From assembly GCA_965285935.1 (NCBI GenBank), contig OZ260663.1:30318001-30382000 (forward strand): a DNA stretch of 64,000 nt, written 5' to 3'. How positions within the stretch are numbered: position 1 is the first letter of the stretch; every line of letters starts with the position of its first letter. The stretch is from Ophelia neglecta. Lineage: Eukaryota. A program made the translations under genes and the position numbers. Positions 13,908 through 64,000 of the stretch are shown here, piece after piece. The notes under the pieces are model-generated. The model was not told the DNA's origin and made no database searches. It saw only the letters and a list, made by a program, of their open reading frames with translations.

Positions 13908-15194
13908 ATGACACTAGAGAAAAGTGTACGGTTGAAAGGAACCCCTCGGCTGCAGACTGATGAGGAGCAAACGGGAGTTGGTCAAGAGCAAGTTGCTCTA
14001 CCCAAATCAAACAAATCGGGACATGTTACGGACTACAACTCAGATCATGGGTACTTTAGCGTCTCCAGTCGTGGATGGTGCTCCAACAGCACGGAAATGT
14101 GTCCAGTCAATTCCGGAATTAGCCCGGCTTTTGAATGGAGCATGGCTGGCGTTTCAGCCTGTTTCGGTTCTTCCGCACAGGTTACACAGCATTTGATGAC
14201 TTCTCCAATCGATCTTAGCAGCAGTGTCCAAAACGAAGACGGGGCAGACGAGTCAAAATCAGACGACTTCGAAAGACATGGCTGTTGTGTAGAAAACCCA
14301 CCTGGTGAGACATTCATAACTTTCGAGCCTGCCACCGAACCAGTGCCTGAGAAACCCCCAACCGACTCTAAAACAAACACTGAATGTTCTCAGCAAATAG
14401 AATCGCCTCTGCCAGTGGTGCTCGACGACACCAGTTCGCAGATAGTTGAATGCAAACTTTTTGATCAGAACAAAGACGGAGATACCCTGGTCCATTTAGC
14501 GGTTATTTTCGCGTTGCAAAAGGCAATTTTTCTCTTACTACGTTGGACAAACAAGGGCGATTTACACTCATTGCTTAGGGTTCAGAACGCAATGTTCCAA
14601 ACCCCACTTATTCTGGCAGTTCTTACGGCGCAGTCTCGTGTCGTGCGCATGCTCACTGTACTCGGATCATCGTTGAGCATGCGCGATCGACACGGAAATA
14701 GCGCGCTGCACATTGCCTGCCAAAATGGCGACTTGAGAACATTAAAGGCTCTGACTCAACCTATCTCTCAGCGGGATGAGATAAGCGTGTCGTTATTACT
14801 GAAACAAAAGTGTGCGGAACGTTTGGTCGATTTTGATATCAATGCGATGAATTACGATGGTTACACGTGCTTGCACCTGGCCGCCATGTGTGGTCACGTG
14901 GACGTTGTGGACTATCTGCTGACTGACCTCGGCTGCAATGTCAACATAGGGGATGGATGTAGTGGTAGAACTATTTTACACCATGCTGTCGAGTCCCAGA
15001 ACTATGAAATGCTTCGTTTTCTTGTAACCAAAAGGAGAAAACTCCACCTTGAAATTGACGCTCAAACATATGCGGGTCACACGCCTCTGAAATTAGCGTT
15101 TGGCAGGGGACTTTCGTCAATTACAAGTCTTCTCATTCTGCTTGGAGCCGACGGCGGTGCAGCAGAATCTGACGACGATGTGTCGTCTGAGTAG
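13908..15194 (+). CDS. NFKBIA: IkB/Cactus-like NF-kB inhibitor, 428 aa, six ankyrin repeats
   Basis: Ankyrin motifs DGDTLVHLAVI, QTPLILAVL, HGNSALHIAC, DGYTCLHLAA, SGRTILHHAVE, AGHTPLKLA, with the IkB-typical insertion between repeats 3 and 4. Degron-like DHGYFS preceded by lysines; acidic tail ESDDDVSSE. The symbol indicates family, not proven orthology. Confidence 0.9.
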   Translation: MTLEKSVRLKGTPRLQTDEEQTGVGQEQVALPKSNKSGHVTDYNSDHGYFSVSSRGWCSNSTEMCPVNSGISPAFEWSMAGVSACFGSSAQVTQHLMTSPIDLSSSVQNEDGADESKSDDFERHGCCVENPPGETFITFEPATEPVPEKPPTDSKTNTECSQQIESPLPVVLDDTSSQIVECKLFDQNKDGDTLVHLAVIFALQKAIFLLLRWTNKGDLHSLLRVQNAMFQTPLILAVLTAQSRVVRMLTVLGSSLSMRDRHGNSALHIACQNGDLRTLKALTQPISQRDEISVSLLLKQKCAERLVDFDINAMNYDGYTCLHLAAMCGHVDVVDYLLTDLGCNVNIGDGCSGRTILHHAVESQNYEMLRFLVTKRRKLHLEIDAQTYAGHTPLKLAFGRGLSSITSLLILLGADGGAAESDDDVSSE

Positions 15195-51903: not shown

Positions 51904-54900
51904 CTCGCTGTTTGATAACGTTACAATGGATGTTGATTGATTGCCTCGAAAAGTTCATTTATTACTGTATGAAGGTCTTAAGGTACCTTGGCAGAGTCGA
52001 GAAAAATATGTGCATGTCTTAATTATTCGCTTTCATTGGCTGATTTTCCATGTAGAATCAGGTACATACTTTCGAACATTTTTCTGTTTGTCACGACCTG
52101 TGCCTCCGTAAAATATTGTGTACCAAAGCGGATCATAAGCTTATCCTTTCATGCCCAATTTCACATTTATTATAATAAAAAAAAGGATAATATGAAGAAA
52201 AGCCATAACAAAAAATAGAATAATATCAACCTTAATTTAAATGGTCGGCATTGGCCTGCGCAGCCTGTTACTGTAGCTTAACACACCCATTACGAAATTA
52301 CGGTCATGACAAAGCGACGTTAAGTTTCTAGAACAAAGAAAGTTTCCGATGGGACCGGGCCATTAAGTGATTGACTGGCTTATCACCGCGAGAGGAAACA
52401 CTGTTCTTGATGAATGGCGTGATATAGGCACGTCACATGACATGAAAGGAGGTAGAGTGTCATTCGCTGATTGTTTTGGATGTGGCAATGTCAATGATTC
52501 CTGGAAAAGGAAAATGAAAAGGCTAAAATGGACTTTATGAGAAATTCCAAGGCAATTTTAGACTGATGAATCATTTGCAATCTCCTGTTGTCAAATACTT
52601 AAGACTTAACAGCAGGCTGTCTCCATGGTCAATAACAATATTTAACGTTCACATAACCTCAACATTTATAACATAAAGGGCCCACTTCTGGTACTGAATA
52701 AAGCACGTTCCTTTTTTTATATTTCCTTAACTCTACGAAACTAAATGTTAGCCCAATAACGCGGTCCATCGTTTTTGCTTTCAAGAATATGGCACGAAAT
52801 GCATCATGTGGAGCGCCATCATGTGCCATTCATATTCAGCGTCAGCTTACATGTTTACAACAATTACGACGAAAAGTTTAATGACGAGACGATGTTCATC
52901 AAGGAATGATATGCCCAGTACTGGCAAGTGTTGGCTTCTCCCAACACGTCAGACATGGAGAAGGCGACTCCGAAAGGCGCCACATGCTGGTTTTACATAA
53001 ACGGGATATCCGAAAAAGCTCACACTATAAGTCATGGCTATGAGGGAGAGCGATTTTCCATTACTATGTAAGAGGTCATTGAGAGACGTAGGAAGTATAC
53101 CAGGACCTGTACTACTCAGGCGGCAAGATATTGGAATAAAACACTTCTGAATGGTTGAATGTGCATAGAAACAGGAGGGAGTCAGGCTCAGAAACTACTC
53201 GTATCATCATTTTATGAACCGGAGTAGTATACTGGACATTTTCCAGAGAGCGACAAAATGAGAAAAATAAACATCAAGGGCAGCATTGCGTGCCGTGTTT
53301 ACTTTTAATTCCTACAAGACTATATTCTATTGTATCTCAAATACACAGCCACGAATATGTAGCGGTGTACTTTACATCACTACTGACAATTTGATTCATT
53401 TGAAGCCCCAATCATCTCTTGTCTCCTCCTATGTTAAATTCTGATTGCAAAGTCAGTTTTGTTAATAGAGATATTTCAGTGTCAGAGAGCTAAAACATTT
53501 TGAAATGACCTGTAATTCTGCAAATATTCAAAACTTTCATAATCCCCAATCATAATTTGAGCTAGTCCATCGGAAAGTTTTCCAACACACTCCAATTAGG
53601 GCCTTTCCATAATTTAAACAATATTGCCACAATCCACGTAGCGAGAGAGTGGACTCCTTTTAAATGCCATTTCCCATTTAATAGGGAATCTGTTGGAAGA
53701 CTTTAAGAAATAATTCTTTTAGCCGCTCTTATAGATAAATATGACAAGCAGATATACCAACATACTGTTCTTTTAGTTCAAATTAACCACAGGTGTACTG
53801 TTATTCGTGTTGTTAACGTCGTTCCGGTTATACCAAGGACGTGTGTTGTGTTTGTAAACGTACAGTGTAATTTGTGTACAGTTTATACAATAATTATTTT
53901 CAAACCATTGAACGTATTATTTGTGGTTTAGAAAATTGAATTTTCAACGATATGATATTCTATTGTCAGCTAAACTATAACTAGTCTAAGACTTATTGAT
54001 AACATATTATTTGTTCATAATATAAATAAGGATCACATGCCCCATGTGTTTCTTTCTAAGAATAGTTCTGACCAATTCTCTATTCTTAATATAGGCAGGT
54101 CAACCATCATAAAAACATGCTCTCGTTAACCAGACAGTAATTTTGTCTTCACATAAGTAACTTGGGTCGTTCCTGGAGGAGTGGCTATCGGAAGTTGCTA
54201 CTCTTCGATCCTTGTCTTTTTTATTGTTTATTGTTTCCATTCTCTTGAACCATAGAGTATCATGGACATTGTATATCGCAGTGATATTATTTAAATAAAG
54301 TGTGAGAGTAGCCCATTATGTACTGAACATTTCCCCTTATCACCTTATAAATCTTTATTGTATAGTGGATGCACGCATAATTTAATATATTCCAAAAATG
54401 TTTTAGATACACCAAAGGCTAAATATCTCAATATATTCATAACGTCCGCCAATTCCTATCATAAGATTAACAGAAAAGATAATTATAGTCTTGACTTATC
54501 TACTGGTGCTATAACAAAGCACCATGCACCATGTCAATAACATTGAACAGATTTAAGCGCAATCTCGGTAGCAAAACAAATGAATGAATACAAAAATACA
54601 TTTTAGTCTTATAATACAATTTTTCGTTATTTTAGTGTAACTTACTTATTAGTAATGTTCATTGTGTGATAAAAAATGAAGGTATAAAAAAATAATCTAT
54701 TGGGCCTTGTTTATCTATACGTTCAATCCAAACACATGTAAAGTACATAATAGTCAACCCAGCATTATTGGCCAATTTTATTGTGGCGCCGTCGGGGATA
54801 AAGGTGAAATGATTAGAGCAGACCTATAACCTCAGACTTTAAATGGACTGAATTTGAAGAACAATGGCACAAACAGTTTCTACCTACGCCATTCAACACA

Positions 54901-55005
54901 CCTCTGTATCCTGGTAAGCGAGTTTAAGGTGACCTGTTTAACTAGCATAAAGCTTTTTTGATTTTAGTATTTAATTACGTTTATTAGCCTAGACGACAGC
55001 ATATC

Positions 55006-55271
55006 ATGTTTTTAATGTTTAACCTATTTTTACGCAATGCATATCGACAACTGGATATTGCTGATAACGCAATGAGACAAAGAACAACAGTAACAAGAAG
55101 TGACGACCGCCATGGTCCCAGGACAACGTCCTTGCTGGACAGACTTTTACAGCCATCTTTAACGAGCAGGTCGAGCTTCAGAAAATTCCGGAGTAAGGAG
55201 GGAATACACCAAGAGTGTATCAGACAGAGGACCATCAATCGATATATCATACACCCTAACAGCACCTTCAG
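55006..55271 (+). CDS. HCN: HCN-like channel exon 1 (HCN domain); start could be ATG 55006, ATG 55072 or further upstream
   Basis: LLQPS...KFRSKEGIHQECIRQ...YIIHPNSTFR matches the HCN-domain / IIHPxSxFR signature; donor AG|GTGAGA, phase 2. Confidence 0.75.
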
Positions 55272-55533
55272 GTGAGACCCATCAAATAGAAGGTATATAT
55301 ACCAAAACGAATAAGTAACGGGTGTATCGATATTTACAATTGGAGACGCAAGTCCGACTTCTAGAATATATAGTTCCGGTGTCATATCATATGTATGTAG
55401 ACGACAATTTTGAGAAAATCGTAATTGTAAAAAGGAATAGTTTTCGTCACACCAATTTCTGGTAAACGTCAATATCTTTTGAAGCCATTATAAAACTTAT
55501 GGGTTTAAACACTAACATTTTTTTTCACTGCAG

Positions 55534-55741
55534 GTGGTGTTGGGATTTGGTTTTACTGGTCAGCTTTGTGGTGACTTTTCTCACCAGTCCCGTAGAGATA
55601 GCTTTCTACTCGATTGACAAAAGCGGAGTAGCCGTTCGAGAACTTTACTGGATGATAGTTCATATCGCCGGAGATGTCATCTTTCTCGTTGATGTTTTTT
55701 TCAGTGCCCGTTCAGCGTTTGTTGGTAGAACAACAGGAGAG
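55534..55741 (+). CDS. HCN: HCN-like exon 2 (S1-S2)
   Basis: cAG|G WCWDLVLL...PVEIAF...GDVIFLVDVFF...TTGE; weak donor GTCCGA, phase 0. Confidence 0.8.
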
Positions 55742-56420
55742 GTCCGAAACCCAAGCAACATCTTATTTTAAAATTTGATAAGTGTTCATTGTTTTGAAGC
55801 AATAATATCATATCATCAATTTGATCATTTCAAATTGACCTCGGCGGGAAAATGTTAAGTAATGAATATGTGAATGACCGTAATTGTTTTTAATATTTTC
55901 CCGGTTATTGGAAGAAAATTTAAATAATATCTTATACTGAAATTATACCCTACAGAGGAGTCTTTCCAGTTTAGTGTGATATTGACCAGCCTCCATATAT
56001 TTCAACACGGGGGTTTTATTCATTATTACAGACTTCACCCAAAATATATCCTTGGAAGTTTGTCTTTGATATGTAACTTTAAAGGCAGTGGTTATTGATT
56101 CTAATGGGTAACTCATTATTTAAGTAACCATGTGACGGTGAACGGTTCGTTCATTTTTTCTCTCGGGCCTTTTTCATTAGTGTGGTTGGCAGTATTATGT
56201 GGATCATAAACATATCAAATTTGCAAGGGGCAATTCATATGAAATGCTCCATTTTGCTAATAAATAAAAGGGGGACGACAAGTTTCCTTTTCTTGTTCAT
56301 CTGAGGGCAACTTATCACACGTTCACAAACTAAAAAAAGGCTGGTTATTTTTTATTATATTACAATGCAATATATTTGCCACACTCAAGGAGACTTTTTT
56401 TCATTGATATTTAATTATAG

Positions 56421-56575
56421 GTTGTTTTAGAAAATCGTGCCATAATACCACGTTATTTTCGTACCTGGTTGGTATTCGATTTGGCAGCCAATATCCCCTT
56501 CGAGTATGTTTACGAGAGATTTGTTCCAAAAGGACCACAATCCAGGACAGTGTTTATCACCACCGTTTCTCTCAA
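56421..56575 (+). CDS. HCN: HCN-like exon 3 (S3 and N-terminal half of S4)
   Basis: tAG|VVLENRAIIPRYFRTWLVFDLAANIPFEYV...QSRTVFITTVSL(K)|GTAAAT, phase 2; not in the ORF track. Confidence 0.8.
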
Positions 56576-56687
56576 GTAAATCGGTAGTTTCCACTATTAG
56601 GATATTGACCTTAATTTGAATTCTGTCGAATAAAGAGAATGCTAATTTACAATGTATTTTTCATTACACAATTCTTCTTGCTTGTAG

Positions 56688-56754
56688 ATTGATGGTTCTC
56701 CTCCGCGTTCTGCTGCTACCCAGACTAATGCCAAGTTTTAACAGACTAACAGAT
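56688..56754 (+). CDS. HCN: HCN-like exon 4 (C-terminal half of S4)
   Basis: cttgtAG|(K)LMVLLRVLLLPRLMPSFNRLTD|GTAATT; phases 2 and 0 fit both neighbours. Confidence 0.7.
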
Positions 56755-58515
56755 GTAATTATATATTTTTTTAAATTCAAATTTTTTTTTATTTTTTTTT
56801 CATCGCTTTAAACGAAAGAAAAATGTAAATCATTGACATTTTATTGAAATGGCTGGAAGTTTACCTAACCCAGCCGATATGCGTTAGACTTCGATATAAG
56901 TGAAAATGAGGATACTTGATGAATTAGTACATAGTAGTTGTTTATGTGTAAGCGACAAGAAGACACCAGTAATATGCTTATTTTCTAGGATACGTTTATA
57001 TCAATATAGTACTGTAGTTGAATAGCTGTGAAAATGACCATTTTATCATTCGTACAAATTTTAATTGTTATGCCAAGCCCCCTGATCCCAATGAAATGAT
57101 TTCAATAGGGAAACAATTGGTGACTTGTGGCATTTTGAAATAAAATTAGGGTAATAGGTTGCAAATAATATGATTCCATCCGAGCGTATAATCTAAAAAT
57201 TGTCTAACTTTCTAATTAGACCCATTCCAATGAAACAAGTTCGCGAAATCGCACAATACGCAATTTCAAAGCGCCTCTTACTCCTCAACTCTTAATTATA
57301 TTAATAATCACCTGTCCCTTGATTGATTAATTATGTGAAGCTAATTATGTCATTAAATGAATTAAACAAAGCAACGCATTGGTATCTAACAGTCGTGTTA
57401 ATATTGGTTTTTGATGTCATTTGCTGGACTGTAGCGCAAAGCTACTATGAACATTTCTTTATGGAACGGAAAAGGATTTAAATTAAGGCGGAAGTTTCCC
57501 ATGATGACATCTATAAATACACCTTACAGCTTAAAAGGCAAAATAGATCTTGTTAACAAGGATAATATTTAATTGGGCAAAAATAGCCTCACTATGAGAA
57601 TATCTTTTCACTCCACACACTAGACTCCCACGCTCATTTTTGAATAACTGAAATAGGTATCAAATGTTCTCCCCCAAACCTCAATACAATAAGTTGTTTA
57701 TGGAGGAACAAAAACATATACAGTCCCGCTTGCCGGAAACCGTGGTGATATCGGAACATTATCGCGAGAATGTCGCCTTGATCTTGCGATATTTGTGCGT
57801 TAAATTCACGACCTGTTTCCGATATTTGCCGGCAAAATCGCGACCCCCATCGCAACTTTATCGCGACATCCATCGCAACTTTATCGGGATTTTGCTTAGA
57901 TCGAGACGGGGGGAGAAGGCTGGTCACGGCATATGCCTATCCAAATTACTACGCTGCATTCAACATCTCTGTACTTCCAGGCAGTATGTACATGTATATT
58001 TCCATTAGGCTGAACTGATTTAAGAAAATGGATGTTGATTGCAGATCGGTCCTTATAAGTCTGTATAAATGTGACTGGCTGGACAGCACAACTGGGTTCC
58101 GATGCACAAAATGTTAAAATATATTTTATACTTTATTATGTTTTGTAACACGTTGGCTAGGAAATGTATTGAACCCAGCCCTGTTTGATGTCTTCTCGTG
58201 TTAATATCATGGGCCGATCTGAAACATTCCAATCAGCCTTGCTTGCGGAGGGCTAACACCACGCGCGATCGCCCTGAATGCCGCTAAATTACTAAAAGTT
58301 ATGTGTGCGTGTTACCAGGCACCTTATAGTTTGATTGTGGCCCAGAGACCTGGGTAAATACTGCCTAATTATGTCATTGCCTAATTAAATGCTTCTCACA
58401 GTTATCGAATACAATTGGTGGAAAAGAAAATGATGTTTTTTTACTGGCTGATCAGGAGGTGTACATCTCTAGACTGACTTGCTAGAAGGGACCGACTGGT
58501 TACATATAGTAGTGC

Positions 58516-58674
58516 GGCTTGTTTGATGTGTTAGTCTCCCTTGATTGGTTTAAGTTTAAGTACAAAAGCCAGCCGACACCTAACGAGCGGTATGTTTGTT
58601 GTGTTAATCTCAACTAGTCTCGACTCGACTACCTGTCTATTGTATCAAAGCCCTTGTGTATTGGCCAGTTCACC
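58516..58674 (+). repeat. 159-bp internal direct repeat, copy 1
   Basis: Six mismatches by eye against 59915-60073. Confidence 0.9.
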
Positions 58675-59040
58675 TACTGGCAATAATTGCCGCTAATTCT
58701 TTGATGAGAGTAGAATTTGAACATTATATGAGCACATCCACTATGCAACTGTTGTGTTGTTTGTTGCAAATCGGCTGACATCGGGTGATTTCCCAATTAG
58801 GCGCCTTTTGAGGGTGGCATTCGTGTGAAAACACAATATTGATGTGCTCCTGTGGCGTGTCACTTTGTTAAATTAATGCCTACAATACAGTTCTTGTGAC
58901 AAGCATGCCCACATCACTTCAATGTGGTAAATCCATAAAACCCCTGTTTATTTTTCTTTGACCCATCTGCCCATTGACTACACTTTTATTGAGAGGTATA
59001 TAACCTGAAAGTTACCTATTGGTGAACCAAAGAATTAAAG

Positions 59041-60207
59041 ATGCCACGCCATTCTATTCATACGCGCAAACATATTGTGACATAGAAAACGGCAGTTTGA
59101 TGGACACCCCTAGGAAAGACTGCTTCCGTAAAGCAACGCCAGAGGTTCTTAGGTTCATAGAATCTGAGTACGATAAACTCGAAAATCGACAGGTAAATAT
59201 ATCTTACACTAGATGTTCCATATTTGTATGTATAGGGTACTATACATTATAGAAGTTAAGCTAGACTGTGATATGTGTAGATGTAGCTATTTTTAAATTA
59301 GGATGTGCCAGTGAAGTAGAGTGTTTCCTAAGTTTATTTGTCAAAATGGAGTATTTAATATAATTTTTTTGTGTTTTTAAAGAGAAACCAGGCTTTATTG
59401 TTTTACAGCTTCGATAATTAAATACTTTATTTTAGGTCACATCTACTGCGATGTCCCATGCTATACGCGAGAGGTTTGGCATAGACATACCGGCAATCAG
59501 CATTCGCCGTATTAGACAAAAGATGAAATTCCATGCCTAGAAATCAGAGTTCTCCCTATGATCAAAGACGCTAACAAGCCGAAGAGGCTCGAATTTGCTT
59601 AGATGCTGATAGAGACTGGTGAAACATTCCATAATGTCGTCTTCACAGACGAATCCGCTTTCCAGAGCCACGCCAATTACCACAAATCACTTGTGAAGGT
59701 ATGTTTGTCACATTTATCTGCCTTCTCGCCATTACTAGATTGTGTATATCCGCTGGCCTAATGGTTATGGTCGATTGTAATAAATATATATTTTAAAATC
59801 ATGCTTTCCCTAAAGTAGTTGTTTTAAAATTGATAGATAATGACTATTGTTCATAATGATTATTATTCCCCCCTTTGGTTGCAAACACAATCGGTCACCT
59901 ACAAGCCTAGCGGTGGCTTGTTTGATGTGTTAGTCTACCTTGATTGGTTTAAGTTCAAGTACACAAGCCAGCCGACACCTAACGAGCGGTATGTTTGATG
60001 TGTTGATCTCAACTAGTCTCGACTCGACTACCTGTCTACTGTATCAAAGCCCTTGTGTATTGGCCAGTTCACCGGGCAATGGCTACGTTTTCTAAGTCAC
60101 ACAAGTTGGCGCCTACGGCGGTGAATCAAGCATCATATACAAGTACTTTTCTTTTCCAGGTACTACCCAAGGTCTGTGAGGCCAAAGTAGGTTACACGGG
60201 ATGCTGA
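59041..60207 (+). pseudogene. Intron-containing IS630-Tc1-mariner transposase pseudogene
   Basis: Exons 59041-59192 (MPRHSIHTRKHIVT / ENGSLMDTPRK...ENRQ), 59436-59698 (AIRERFGIDI...RRIRQKM / PMIKDANKPKRLEFA*...ETFHNVVFTDES) and 60160-60207 (VLPKVCEAKVGYTGC*), all with phase-0 GT-AG boundaries. Stops and frameshifts present; second D and E missing. Confidence 0.8.
59915..60073 (+). repeat. 159-bp internal direct repeat, copy 2
   Basis: About 96% identical to 58516-58674. Confidence 0.9.
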
Positions 60208-61078
60208 AAACCAGTTCATTGTACAAAGTCTTACAGAAAAATCTAGGCTTATAATAGCATTAGTATATTTACATAGCTTGTCATTACTTTCTATCAATTG
60301 TCATGCATCAGAAATATTTTACACACGTTCATGAAATTATAATCTTTTCTAATAAATATTGCTAGTGTATCAAATAGTTAAGCGAATTAGTTAATTTAGT
60401 AGAGCGTTGACATTTTGGAATGGTTATAGTTAAATGGCTTATAATGGTTATCTTCCATTCTTCACGTATTTAATTAGCCCAATAAAATGTCAGTAGCCCA
60501 ATATTATATGGTTTCGGTGAGTTGTTAGTAGTAATTGTCATAAAGAAAGAGGCCGTTTTTTGTGGAATGGCCTACTAGGATACACGGCGGCGGCGGCGGC
60601 GGAAAAGCATTTTCCTTTGTCACTACGTTAAAGCTCTTATACTAGAAATTAATGTTATTGAAAGGAACTATATTTTCTGTCGCGTTAATAAACACGGGTG
60701 TAAGTAGGTGAATAGGTATTGGCCTTGGGGCGATCTCGCGATAATGTTGCGACCTACGTCGAGGAAATATCGCAATAATGTCGCCAGGGATGCCGACATT
60801 ATCGGGATATTATTGCGGCATAACGGCGACAGTTTTCCGACCCAACATCGCGATATCACCACGGTTTCCGGCAAGCGGGACTGTAATATAGAGAAACTTT
60901 GATATGTATTTAATTAGAAGTCTGATTTAGTTTATTTAGTATTCAAAGTAAGACCAATTAACTCAAAATAATCAATTTTTCTGTCAATTTCAATATTCAT
61001 AATTTTAATCATATCGTCAGGAACTTTTTAACACAACACGATCATTGATTATATTTTTCAAGATTGTTTTCCTTGTAG

Positions 61079-61237
61079 ATGTTACAATTGGAGGGTTTTG
61101 TCGTTAGGATTTTTAACCTGGTCCTTGTCATTCTCTTGTTTTGTCATTGGAATGCCTGTTTGCAGTGGATCAGTGCCTACTTAGAACATTACCCAGACTT
61201 TCCCAGTACCAGCTGGGTGATCATCGACAATCTTCAG
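61079..61237 (+). CDS. HCN: HCN-like exon 5 (S5)
   Basis: ccttgtAG|MLQLEGFVVRIFNLVLVILLFCHWNACLQW...FPSTSWVIIDNLQ|GTAGGG (compare HCN VVRIFNL...CHWDGCLQF). Confidence 0.88.
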
Positions 61238-62228
61238 GTAGGGTTACCCATTTTCTCTAAGAACTCTTCACATAGCCATGATGTCTACGCCGACCCAGGA
61301 ATTGTGAGCACTGCTGCTTTAAACTTGCATTAAAAGAAGTAAAACAGGAGTAGACACCAGGCAGACAAAGTAAAATCATTATTCCAGAATATCCAGAACA
61401 AGAATATGGATTAATAATCCACGAATGCATCTATAACTTGTAAGATCCTTATGAAAATGCCCATAATATATGACGGAGCCATTACACTATTGATGAACAT
61501 CATTTGCAGAGATCAATGTTAGGTTTTAGCTGCCATTCGTTTATGTTCAAGTAATAGATTGCAATGACATGGCAAATTCCTCGTATTCTAGGGCCTGTGA
61601 CGATGTTCATCTGCGTCATACTGGTATCAAAACAACGACTCTAGGTGAAGTTGTTCAAAAACAACCAAGGCGTCAGTGGTTAAAAGTAGAGATTTCACAT
61701 GAATTTATTTAACTATTGAAGGAATATAAAACCAGTTGCCTTTCAGACTGCAGAGTATTTTCACCACCTTCCTTCTTAAGACATGTGCTTCTGTGTTGTA
61801 CCTCACTAACGAGATGGAGCCTATTGCACCCTAGAATTTCCCAGGGCATATTTTATCTTCTTCTTCCATTGACCACTTATTCATTTGCCTCTCGGTTAAA
61901 TGCACACCACCAACACAATTATAAAGGCTTTACGATTGATAACCACCGCAACCGCGAGACAGCGACTATCCGTGGCCAGACGTACCGAACAATGCTGAGG
62001 CCGGCACACATGTACGAACAACTGGGAGTGGATACCCGGTAGAAAAGCAAAATCATTAATTAAGAATATCCCACTTAAGCGGTCAGGGATCATCAGGAAC
62101 CATCCCTCACAGGCCCTAATACATTATCCCCGTTCAGGAACAGCATTTAAACATGTAATGTAAAGTTTACCCATGTGCTAAATGTATCTTAGCAGTAACA
62201 ATTTCAGTCAGAAGTACTTTGTTCGTAG

Positions 62229-62453
62229 GCTGACGATGTGACAGTATGGTCCAGATACTCCAGAGCCTTATTTAGAGCTTTATCTCATATGTTGTGTATT
62301 GGTTATGGGACCCTTCCCCCTGAGAGCTTGGGAGAAATTTGGATGGTATTGATCAGTCAAACTTTAGGAGCCACCTTCTACGCTCTTTTTATTGCCAGTT
62401 TGTCAGGTCTCGTTATGTCTCGTGATGTATCCGCCAGGAAGTACGGAGAAAGG
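62229..62453 (+). CDS. HCN: HCN-like exon 6 (pore helix, CIGYG filter, S6)
   Basis: YSRALFRALSHMLCIGYGTLPP...EIW...GATFYALFIA...SARKYGER|GTAAAA. Confidence 0.92.
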
Positions 62454-62592
62454 GTAAAATCTTTGAAACTTGGGTCTTGAATTTACGCGTTAAAGTCAAC
62501 TTTATTATTCATCATATATTAAAATGCGTGTTTATGAAAACCAAACTAGAGATGAATGCACGTCAATAATAAATAAGGTGTTTGTTTCAAAG

Positions 62593-62745
62593 CTCTCCGA
62601 GGTTAAACAGTACATGTTGTACAGACGAGTACCCAAAGACATTCAGAAGAAAGTGTTAGAATATTATGACCATAAATATCAAGGAAAATATTTCGACGAG
62701 TTTGCGATTCTCTTCGAACCAACGCTATCTAAGCCTATACAGCAG
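62593..62745 (+). CDS. HCN: HCN-like exon 7 (C-linker)
   Basis: LSEVKQYMLYRRVPKDIQKKVLEYYDHKYQGKYFDE..IL...LSKPIQQ|GTAATA. Confidence 0.9.
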
Positions 62746-63016
62746 GTAATACTTGTTCTCAACTGATATCAGTTATTTTTTTATAAAGTCCCACGACTCA
62801 TTAAATGCAAGTATATGCTTTGTCATATGCATACGCCCTTGGAGGAATGCAGGGAGGGCGATGGGCAAAAAGGGGGCGACGGGTGGGAAGAAATAATTCA
62901 GCAAGACAGTTCTTTTTCATTATTTCGACTTCACTAGCGCCTCCCTTATTAAATAAATCCCATATTGTACTTATTTTGAAATATCAAATGTTAAAACAAA
63001 TATTTCTTGTTAATAG

Positions 63017-63155
63017 GAAATACACATGCACATTTGTAAGAAGCTGGTGGAAACAGTTCCTATTTTCTCATCCGCGCCCCAGGACTTCCTTTACAATGTC
63101 ATGTGTAAACTTAACCATCTGGTGTTTCTTGCTGGGGACTACATTGTCCAGGAAG
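63017..63155 (+). CDS. HCN: HCN-like exon 8 (C-linker and start of CNBD)
   Basis: EIHMHICKKLVETVPIFSSAPQDFL...L...VFLAGDYIVQE G|GTATAT, phase 1. Confidence 0.88.
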
Positions 63156-63312
63156 GTATATTCTTTTCAGGATGTCGTTTACTGTATTGAATTAAGGGGT
63201 TAAGAAGCAAAAAGTAAAATATTTGATTGATATTGTTCCCCTTGATATTGGAAAACCTCACCTGGAAATATAATTAACAGCATAATTATTGTCCTGTCTC
63301 GGTTTGCACCAG

Positions 63313-63417
63313 GGAAAAGAGGGGACTGTATGTATTTTATCAAACACGGAAGTGTAGACGTTATTTTACCTAGTGGCGAAGTGGTAAATACTCTAGCCGA
63401 CGGAGGCTTCTTTGGAG
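63313..63417 (+). CDS. HCN: HCN-like exon 9 (CNBD beta-roll)
   Basis: (G)KRGDCMYFIKHGSVDVILPSGEVVNTLADGGFFG (E)|GTGAGC. Confidence 0.88.
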
Positions 63418-63668
63418 GTGAGCACTGGAATATAAGCATGTTTTAAGTGTATCAGTGGGGATTGAACGGGAGAGAGGGGCGCGGTACTTAGATGTGGATA
63501 GAAACTTCTCAATGTACAATTTTATTTAATATTTGCCCAAACGTTGTTTTCTAATTGTAACTGATATTCATGTCTTCATGTGTGGTTCTCTCCAACGATA
63601 TTGAGACGGTGGCAAGTTATAGAGTATTTTACATATTAGCCTTTTGACTACTTGTTATGTATTTTCAG

Positions 63669-63763
63669 AGATTTCATTATTATTTGCACAACGGAGAATG
63701 GCATCTGTGGTGGCAAGGGAAGCATGTGATGTCTATCAACTTACAAAGCAAGATTTTGATGAG
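63669..63763 (+). CDS. HCN: HCN-like exon 10 (phosphate-binding cassette)
   Basis: (E)ISLLFAQRRMASVVAREACDVYQLTKQDFDE|GT. Confidence 0.88.
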
Positions 63764-63913
63764 GTTATATTACACACTGTTTCGAATACTTCATACATTT
63801 TTTTGCTCATTTGCTAGCCCAATGTATTACAATTTTAAAATGAATAGATATATATGGTCAGTTTACTTAAAACAACCAGATATAAAATGACAGTTTTCCT
63901 TATATGAAAACAG

Positions 63914-64000
63914 GTACTGCAGGACAACCCTGATATGAAAGGGAGGCTTGAAATAATGGCTAAAGAAAGAATGTCCAGCAGTTTACAAACTTCGGCCGAG
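63914..64000 (+). CDS. HCN: HCN-like exon 11 (B/C helices), still open at the window end
   Basis: cAG|VLQDNPDMKGRLEIMAKERM... (compare HCN [20 protein letters not shown]). Confidence 0.85.

Follow-up and report, generated by a model that had tools for sequence, protein, structure and literature searches.

Tandem HCN-family genes with a charge-poor S4 and a conserved pore and cyclic-nucleotide-binding domain in Ophelia neglecta

We analyzed a stretch of 64,000 nucleotides (hereafter the window) from the genome of Ophelia neglecta (assembly GCA_965285935.1, contig OZ260663.1, positions 30,318,001 to 30,382,000 of the forward strand, or G000:C5:30318001-30382000 in our own coordinates). Gene coordinates given below are positions in this window. 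The window has a GC content of about 37% and is clearly eukaryotic. It contains an HCN-family channel gene of 11 exons, which we call gene A, that spans positions 55072-64000 on the plus strand and whose final exon continues for 45 nt beyond the window. Gene A encodes a fourth transmembrane segment (S4) that is very poor in basic residues, together with a conserved pore and cyclic-nucleotide-binding domain (CNBD). It has a tandem twin, gene B, with the same peculiarities, and the closest relative of both in the genome, gene C, has an S4 with seven basic residues.

All homology searches were made exon by exon, and the model of gene A was extended by tblastn with two full-length relatives (P0123, from the nemertean Tubulanus, and P0033) and by the reading of splice sites. 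All introns are GT-AG, their phases are consistent, there are no stop codons, and the predicted protein has about 545 residues. Exon 1 (55072-55271, like all the others on the plus strand) contains the start codon and the HCN domain, and ends in AG before the gt of the donor. The genome scan matched it at 55141-55269, and its HCN domain is recognized by the Pfam profile PF08412 (Ion_trans_N) with an E-value of 2.2e-10 and 40.4 bits, for a cut-off of 27 bits. An in-frame ATG is also present at 55005, ahead of the modeled start. Exon 2 (55534-55741) encodes S1 and S2 and aligns to residues 144-202 of HCN1. Exon 3 (56421-56575) encodes S3, the S3-S4 loop, and the N-terminal part of S4 (from about 56538), and is followed by the S4 core in exon 4 (56688-56754). 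Exon 3 ends in ...TVSL plus AA before the gt donor and exon 4 opens with A after the ag acceptor, which results in a split Lys codon followed by LMVLLRVLLLPRLMPSFNRLTD. The S4-S5 junction and S5 are in exon 5 (61079-61237; VVRIFNL...CHWN), whereas the pore helix, the CIGYG filter (62295-62309), and S6 are in exon 6 (62229-62453). A preliminary description of the locus had reported the peptides of exons 3 to 6 and the position of the filter. Our retranslation agrees with it, except that the end of exon 5 had been placed at 61238 and is corrected to 61237.

The cytoplasmic part of the channel is encoded by the five remaining exons. Exon 7 (62593-62745), found by tblastn with both P0123 and P0033, encodes the C-linker and has 69% identity with the corresponding exon of gene C. 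Exon 8 (63017-63155) encodes the end of the C-linker and the start of the CNBD. The beta-roll of the CNBD is in exon 9 (63313-63417), which matches the Pfam profile cNMP_binding (1e-5) and the CNBD of a sea urchin HCN channel (PDB 2ptm, 8.6e-5). The phosphate-binding cassette, (G)EISLL..RRMASV, is in exon 10 (63669-63763; cNMP_binding, 2.4e-5). Finally, exon 11 (63914-64000) encodes the C-helix of the CNBD and a short tail, with a stop codon 45 nt past the end of the window, and gene B ends in the same way. The earlier claim that the C-linker and the CNBD are preserved thus stands as to their presence, but the exons concerned are at 62593-63763 and beyond, outside the interval ending at 62453 to which it had been attached.

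When the exons were searched one at a time against the PDB, the top matches were to HCN1, HCN3, and HCN4, with E-values of 3.4e-17 for the pore and S6 (HCN1), 3e-8 for S5 (HCN3 and HCN1), 3e-3 for S3, and 2e-3 for S1-S2. As judged from its sequence, the predicted protein has the features of the HCN family, i.e., the HCN domain, a six-transmembrane core with the CIGYG filter, and a C-linker with a CNBD. The Glu and the Arg of the cassette are kept within a GE...RR[MV]AS motif. The Thr position of the cassette is Met in gene A, and Val in genes B and C and in the subfamily to which they belong (see below).

To describe S4 we use the numbering of human HCN1, which was obtained from PDB alignments (end residue 246, restart 291) and a lamprey sequence (P0167), and which agrees with published work (PMC6904216). 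The part of S4 encoded by exon 3 of gene A has no basic residue in register, and the whole segment has only three, at positions 261, 267, and 273. These are the K, R, and R of the preliminary description, which we confirm. Ser264 is replaced by Val, position 270 is Leu, positions 272 and 276 are Pro, and the Glu-Glu pair at 282/283 has become Thr-Asp. Exon 4 has 9 nt less than exon 4 of gene C, which makes S4 shorter by three residues, or one helical turn. The other 25 aligned sequences of the HCN family have 7-9 basic residues in S4, with the exception of a very divergent beetle protein (5). Since nearly all these relatives have 7-9, the low count of gene A is that of an outlier and not the result of chance. 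A long S4 with at least seven basic residues at every third position and a Ser interruption is found neither in gene A (three basic residues) nor in gene B (four). Our searches of the literature found no description of a metazoan HCN channel with a charge-poor S4 and an intact pore.

A different, Arg-rich S4 exon, the existence of which had been raised in the preliminary description, was not found in 54000-64000. A six-frame scan of both strands of this interval with a regular expression for four basic residues at every third position gave no match, and when the S4 exons of gene C and of the canonical HCN gene served as queries in a permissive tblastn, exon 4 was the only match. The junction between exons 3 and 4 is supported by the presence of the same phase-2 intron inside an S4 codon in gene A, in gene C, and in the NCBI-annotated gene of Tubulanus. 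The letters of S4 are unlikely to be an assembly slip, because exon 4 is identical in contigs obtained independently of the assembly from three public runs of a single sample, which may be the one that was assembled. In exon 3 these contigs show two probably allelic variants, a synonymous T>C at 56492 and a C>A at 56563 that replaces Thr by Asn in N-terminal S4. The contigs that hold the gene A locus cover its introns, and are hence DNA-like. Public records list no RNA run for this species. Some run contigs skip 240-244 nt, from 55276 to 55517/55521. We considered these joints as splicing or deletion and rejected both, given that genes A and B share identical 30-mers. The skips are most likely due to cross-mapped contigs of gene B, which shares words with gene A where exon 1 ends and where exon 2 begins.

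The genome scan revealed four loci with an HCN domain: a canonical HCN gene, gene C, gene A, and gene B. Gene B starts 9.5 kb after the pore exon of gene A, and the two have identical exon lengths and splice sites in all 10 exons compared. Its S4 differs from that of gene A in three residues only: one Thr is replaced by Ile, Leu270 by Arg, and the final Asp by Asn. Gene C lies on the minus strand of another contig (C2). Its splice positions match those of gene A, apart from the last intron, which is absent from gene C, and from the different lengths of exons 3 and 4. The canonical HCN gene, on contig C8, is large and encodes a normal S4. In the exons compared, gene A has 82% identity with gene B, 52% with gene C, and 36% with the canonical gene. 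The twins differ in intron 4, which has 4324 nt in gene A and 728 nt in gene B. The alignment of their DNA is broken there from 56767 to 61051, and a transposon-like insert, with no strand assigned, occupies 57721-60883 in gene A. As the extra DNA is present in A and not in B, the insertion is more recent than their duplication.

To quantify selection, we made Nei-Gojobori counts for each exon and then summed them. Genes A and B differ by 104.7 synonymous changes over 326 sites and 67.3 non-synonymous changes over 1168 sites, i.e., a synonymous divergence (dS) of 0.419, a non-synonymous divergence (dN) of 0.060, and a ratio of the two (omega) of 0.143 (Fisher test, p = 4e-33). The segment of S4 itself, taken as the last 12 codons of exon 3 and the whole of exon 4, shows 15 synonymous and 3 non-synonymous differences (p = 6e-8), and exon 4 alone shows 11 and 2. 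When the amino acid changes are polarized with gene C, 22 fall on A and 15 on B, and this nearly even distribution indicates that gene A is not decaying. Hence, the charge-poor S4 is older than the duplication that separated A from B and has been conserved since. We rejected the reading of gene A as a pseudogene, in line with the preliminary description, because omega relative to its tandem twin is 0.14 and because the S4 segment is itself constrained. In a broader form, this alternative holds that gene A is non-functional, as a decaying duplicate, or that its model is wrong and the transcript contains a different S4. We regard it as very improbable. In its favor, the transcript of gene A is predicted from DNA, the gene has a transposon of 3 kb in intron 4, and its cassette has a Met where its kin have Val. 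However, omega is low overall and lower still in the S4 exon, 11 of 11 exons are open, the splice sites are conserved in both copies, there is no other S4-like exon, and the branches of A and B are equal in length.

We then placed these genes in a phylogeny of the family. The exon peptides of genes A, B, and C, of the canonical gene, and of a contig from another sample (L011, see below) were used as fragments, merged by alignment column, together with 23 full-length relatives. The maximum likelihood tree was built with the model LG+C20 on 574 columns and rooted with KCNH7 as an outgroup. Genes A and B group together (support of 100/100) within the HCN ingroup, and gene C is their sister (99/95), which bears out the earlier proposal of a divergent HCN paralogue. 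The three genes belong to a clade (88/94) that also includes proteins of Owenia, Lingula, Tubulanus, Patiria, and Ptychodera, and two transcript-derived proteins, and that is separate from the clade of canonical HCN. The members from Patiria and Ptychodera have a SIGFG filter, which is the one reported for SpHCN2, the second HCN isoform of the sea urchin S. purpuratus (PMC9614928), and we therefore named the clade the SpHCN2-like subfamily. The stem of A and B measures 1.06 changes per site, the tip of C 0.25, and the tips of A and B 0.14 each. Altogether, genes A and B underwent duplication, a burst of remodeling, and subsequent purifying selection. The proper baseline for their comparison is gene C, and not the canonical HCN used in the preliminary description, since gene C already has KLEE in place of QWEE, Ala at position 272, and seven basic residues.

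We searched for orthologues of the A/B type in other species. In a library of 1.84 billion representative sequences, the best match had 67% identity to exon 6 (P0026, on contig L011), but L011 encodes a normal S4 of the gene C type, and P0026 is thus not of the A/B type. This contig of 10.6 kb (ENA ERZ25084518) reads …LTLRILR / TKLLSLLRILRVARLVRYIYKIEE in S4 and has a SIGYG filter, and its HCN gene is the closest relative that we found outside the genome of O. neglecta. In a library of 5.8 billion sequences, the matches had at most 57% identity, among fragments of 41-131 residues. A full-length search with P0123 found no S4-poor protein apart from the very divergent beetle protein. The latter (P0182, from Exocentrus adspersus, 558 residues) has an HCN domain and a CNBD, and both its S4 and its filter (NIYLS) are degenerate. 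Its branch within the SpHCN2-like clade is very long, and its position in the tree is uncertain.

A few observations concern other loci. The canonical HCN gene has two similar S5 exons in tandem (G000:C8:54709997-54710152 and 54710757-54710915), which match the same residues of P0033 with 58-65% identity and are candidates for mutually exclusive splicing. A comparable tandem doubling, in this case of the pore exon, is found in proteins P0001-P0003 of other animals. On a further contig (G000:C7:42022121-42031561), three tandem and apparently intronless open reading frames of 372-578 residues match HCN from S3 to the CNBD with 26-30% identity, and look like a separate cluster of CNBD-channel-like genes. 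Within the window, an open reading frame of 428 residues at 13908-15194 (plus strand) encodes ankyrin repeats (Pfam Ank_2, 1e-26) and is unrelated to the channel gene.

The changes in genes A and B are not confined to S4, contrary to what had been proposed. In the family alignment, the S2-S3 loop NFRTG has become SARSA in gene A and SFRSA in gene B. In S3 of both, SS is replaced by AA and D233 by Glu. The acidic pair after S4 is lost, with EE changed to TD in gene A (RLTD), and RLTN in gene B. In S6, IGH has become IAS. At the same time, both genes keep D183, F186, and D189 in S2, D225 in S3, and R267 and R273 in S4, and gene B also keeps R270. To call the sensor dismantled, as in the preliminary description, is therefore too strong. 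The filter, Y386, the C-linker, and the Glu and Arg of the cassette are also kept.

The conservation of the cytoplasmic and pore regions bears on the possible role of these proteins as partners of other subunits. Silent Kv subunits and CNGB subunits are modulatory subunits that function in heteromers. By analogy, the products of A and B might not work alone, but co-assemble with those of gene C or of the canonical HCN gene and make the heteromer less sensitive to voltage. The genome has A, B, and C as closely related genes, two copies have been retained, and the parts that mediate assembly (the HCN domain, the C-linker, and the pore) are conserved. Yet, we found no sequence feature specific to silent subunits, and the filter and S6 look fully competent, so we hold this role to be improbable.

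The consequences of the altered S4 can be considered in the light of what is known of HCN1. In this channel, most of the gating charge resides on R267 and R270, which move past F186, and S4 breaks at L271/S272 upon hyperpolarization, the polarity of gating following the turn propensity of residue 272 (PMC6904216). The charges of the N-terminal part of S4 are mainly static stabilizers, and the neutralization of one of them shifts activation by about 20 mV (PMC2217414). If R267 and R270 are the main carriers, then gene B keeps both and gene A keeps one. In both, a Pro is located exactly at the breakpoint and a second one a turn later. On this basis, the two channels would be expected to move less gating charge, and their S4 to stay bent whatever the voltage.

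The reading that we favor, with moderate confidence, is that genes A and B are intact, lineage-specific duplicates of gene C in which the sensor was remodeled and then placed under purifying selection, and that their product is weakly voltage-dependent, or voltage-dependent in a shifted range, and relies more on its ligand. A single fast burst following duplication from gene C remodeled both the voltage sensor and its cytoplasmic interface. It reduced the basic residues of S4 in register from seven to three (A) or four (B), removed one helical turn, placed a Pro at position 272, where the helix breaks, and another at 276, eliminated the acidic pair at the end of S4, and altered the S2-S3 loop, with purifying selection on both copies thereafter. 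The product would be a tetrameric channel for cations, with a pore of the HCN type and a functional CNBD, whose gating charge per subunit may be much below that of a normal HCN. Its S4 would probably be permanently bent at the place where that of HCN1 breaks only upon hyperpolarization, and its opening might depend weakly on voltage, or in a shifted range, and relatively more on cyclic nucleotides.

Several points weigh against this reading. The expression and splicing of gene A are inferred from its DNA sequence. The idea that S4 is probably bent is based on the sequence and on published chimeras. No orthologue of A or B was found in other species, although these negative results are weak because few relatives are sampled and because of length filters. 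Finally, the conserved counter-charges, the Phe plug, and R267 and R273 could equally mean that voltage sensing has been retained. The latter is the basis of a serious alternative, which we regard as less likely than the favored reading, in which A and B are still true hyperpolarization-activated channels that differ from normal HCN in slope and midpoint alone. Two or three charges per subunit (267, 273, and in B also 270) would then pass Phe186 and the acidic center, and Pro272 would favor a break of the HCN type. Consistent with this, selection has preserved F186, D183, D189, and D225, the charge is carried chiefly by R267 and R270 in HCN1 and a high turn propensity at 272 favors inward rectification (PMC6904216), and the neutralization of N-terminal charges shifts activation by only about 20 mV each (PMC2217414). 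On the other hand, gene A lacks R270 and R276, as well as the acidic pair at the end of S4 and the NFRTG loop, neither of which varies, or hardly so, among the other members of the family. This alternative partly overlaps the reading that we favor, and the difference is one of degree. The opposite extreme, close to the voltage independence suggested in the preliminary description, is that Pro272 and Pro276 fix the helix break and that, with two or three gating charges per subunit, the channels are essentially voltage-independent, and either gated by cyclic nucleotides or constitutively open. We see this as a tentative option and rather doubt it.

How the movement of S4 in HCN channels causes opening upon hyperpolarization is still debated. 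Current models of HCN gating rest on the charges at 267-276 and on the helix break at 271/272. The genome of O. neglecta offers a graded series of natural sensors, with seven charges and Ala272 in C, four charges and Pro272 in B, and three charges and Pro272 in A, in genes that conserve the pore and the CNBD and are all under selection. The trio is thus a natural test of the number of charges and of the breakpoint residue that are needed for voltage gating. If the channels of A and B were indeed voltage-independent, they would represent an independent and recent transition from an HCN to a CNG-like channel, with the unmodified parent gene C in the same genome. The analysis also shows that a second subfamily of bilaterian HCN channels, of the SpHCN2 type, spans echinoderms, hemichordates, annelids, brachiopods, and nemerteans.

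Among known channels, A and B nest inside the SpHCN2-like subfamily (Patiria P0154, Ptychodera P0159, Lingula P0152, Owenia P0153, Tubulanus P0123, and gene C), for none of whose members did we find a functional description in the literature. They share with it a short length (about 545-720 residues), the HCN domain, a GYG or GFG filter, a cassette of the RRVASV type, and a Met at the gate position Q398. The other members have 7-8 basic residues in S4, Ser264, Ala, Ser, or Thr at 272, an S4 that ends in [KR]-[LIM]-E-E, and the loop NFRTG (NFFTG in Patiria and Ptychodera), whereas A and B have 3-4 basic residues, Val264, Pro272, Pro276, RLTD or RLTN, and SARSA or SFRSA. Their filter is CIGYG, whereas it is SIGYG or SIGFG in the subfamily. 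Accordingly, A and B do not match the subfamily motifs S-I-G-[YF]-G, [KR]-[LIM]-E-E, and RRVA[ST] as a set, the cassette being RRVAS in B and RRMAS in A. Canonical HCN channels (human HCN1-4, spHCN1, and the C8 gene) resemble A and B in domain order, the CIGYG filter, the C-linker, the CNBD, the acidic residues of S2 and S3, and the Phe plug, but they have 8-9 basic residues in S4 and QWEE.

The HCNL1 and HCNL2 channels of fish are, like A and B, HCN-derived paralogues with an altered S4 and a CNBD. In HCNL1 the long series of Arg residues is preserved apart from one Met, at the third position, the CIGYG filter is gone, and the voltage sensor itself conducts protons (PMC7306766). Genes A and B are the reverse, with an intact filter and a depleted S4, and the preliminary description had already noted the difference in the pore. 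We rejected their membership of the HCNL group because this combination is at odds with its definition (PMC7306766). Membership of the CNG family was also rejected, since A and B have the HCN domain, which is absent from CNG channels, and the similarity of their exons to HCN is far greater than that to CNGA. In metazoans, the filter of CNG channels is TIGE (PMC7576140). CNG channels and prokaryotic CNBD channels (SthK, MloK1, LliK) are not kin of A and B at the subfamily level, exon 6 matching SthK at 4e-4 and HCN1 at 3e-17. Nevertheless, should A and B be only weakly voltage-dependent, they would resemble these channels in operation, with a six-transmembrane pore controlled for the most part by the C-linker and the CNBD.

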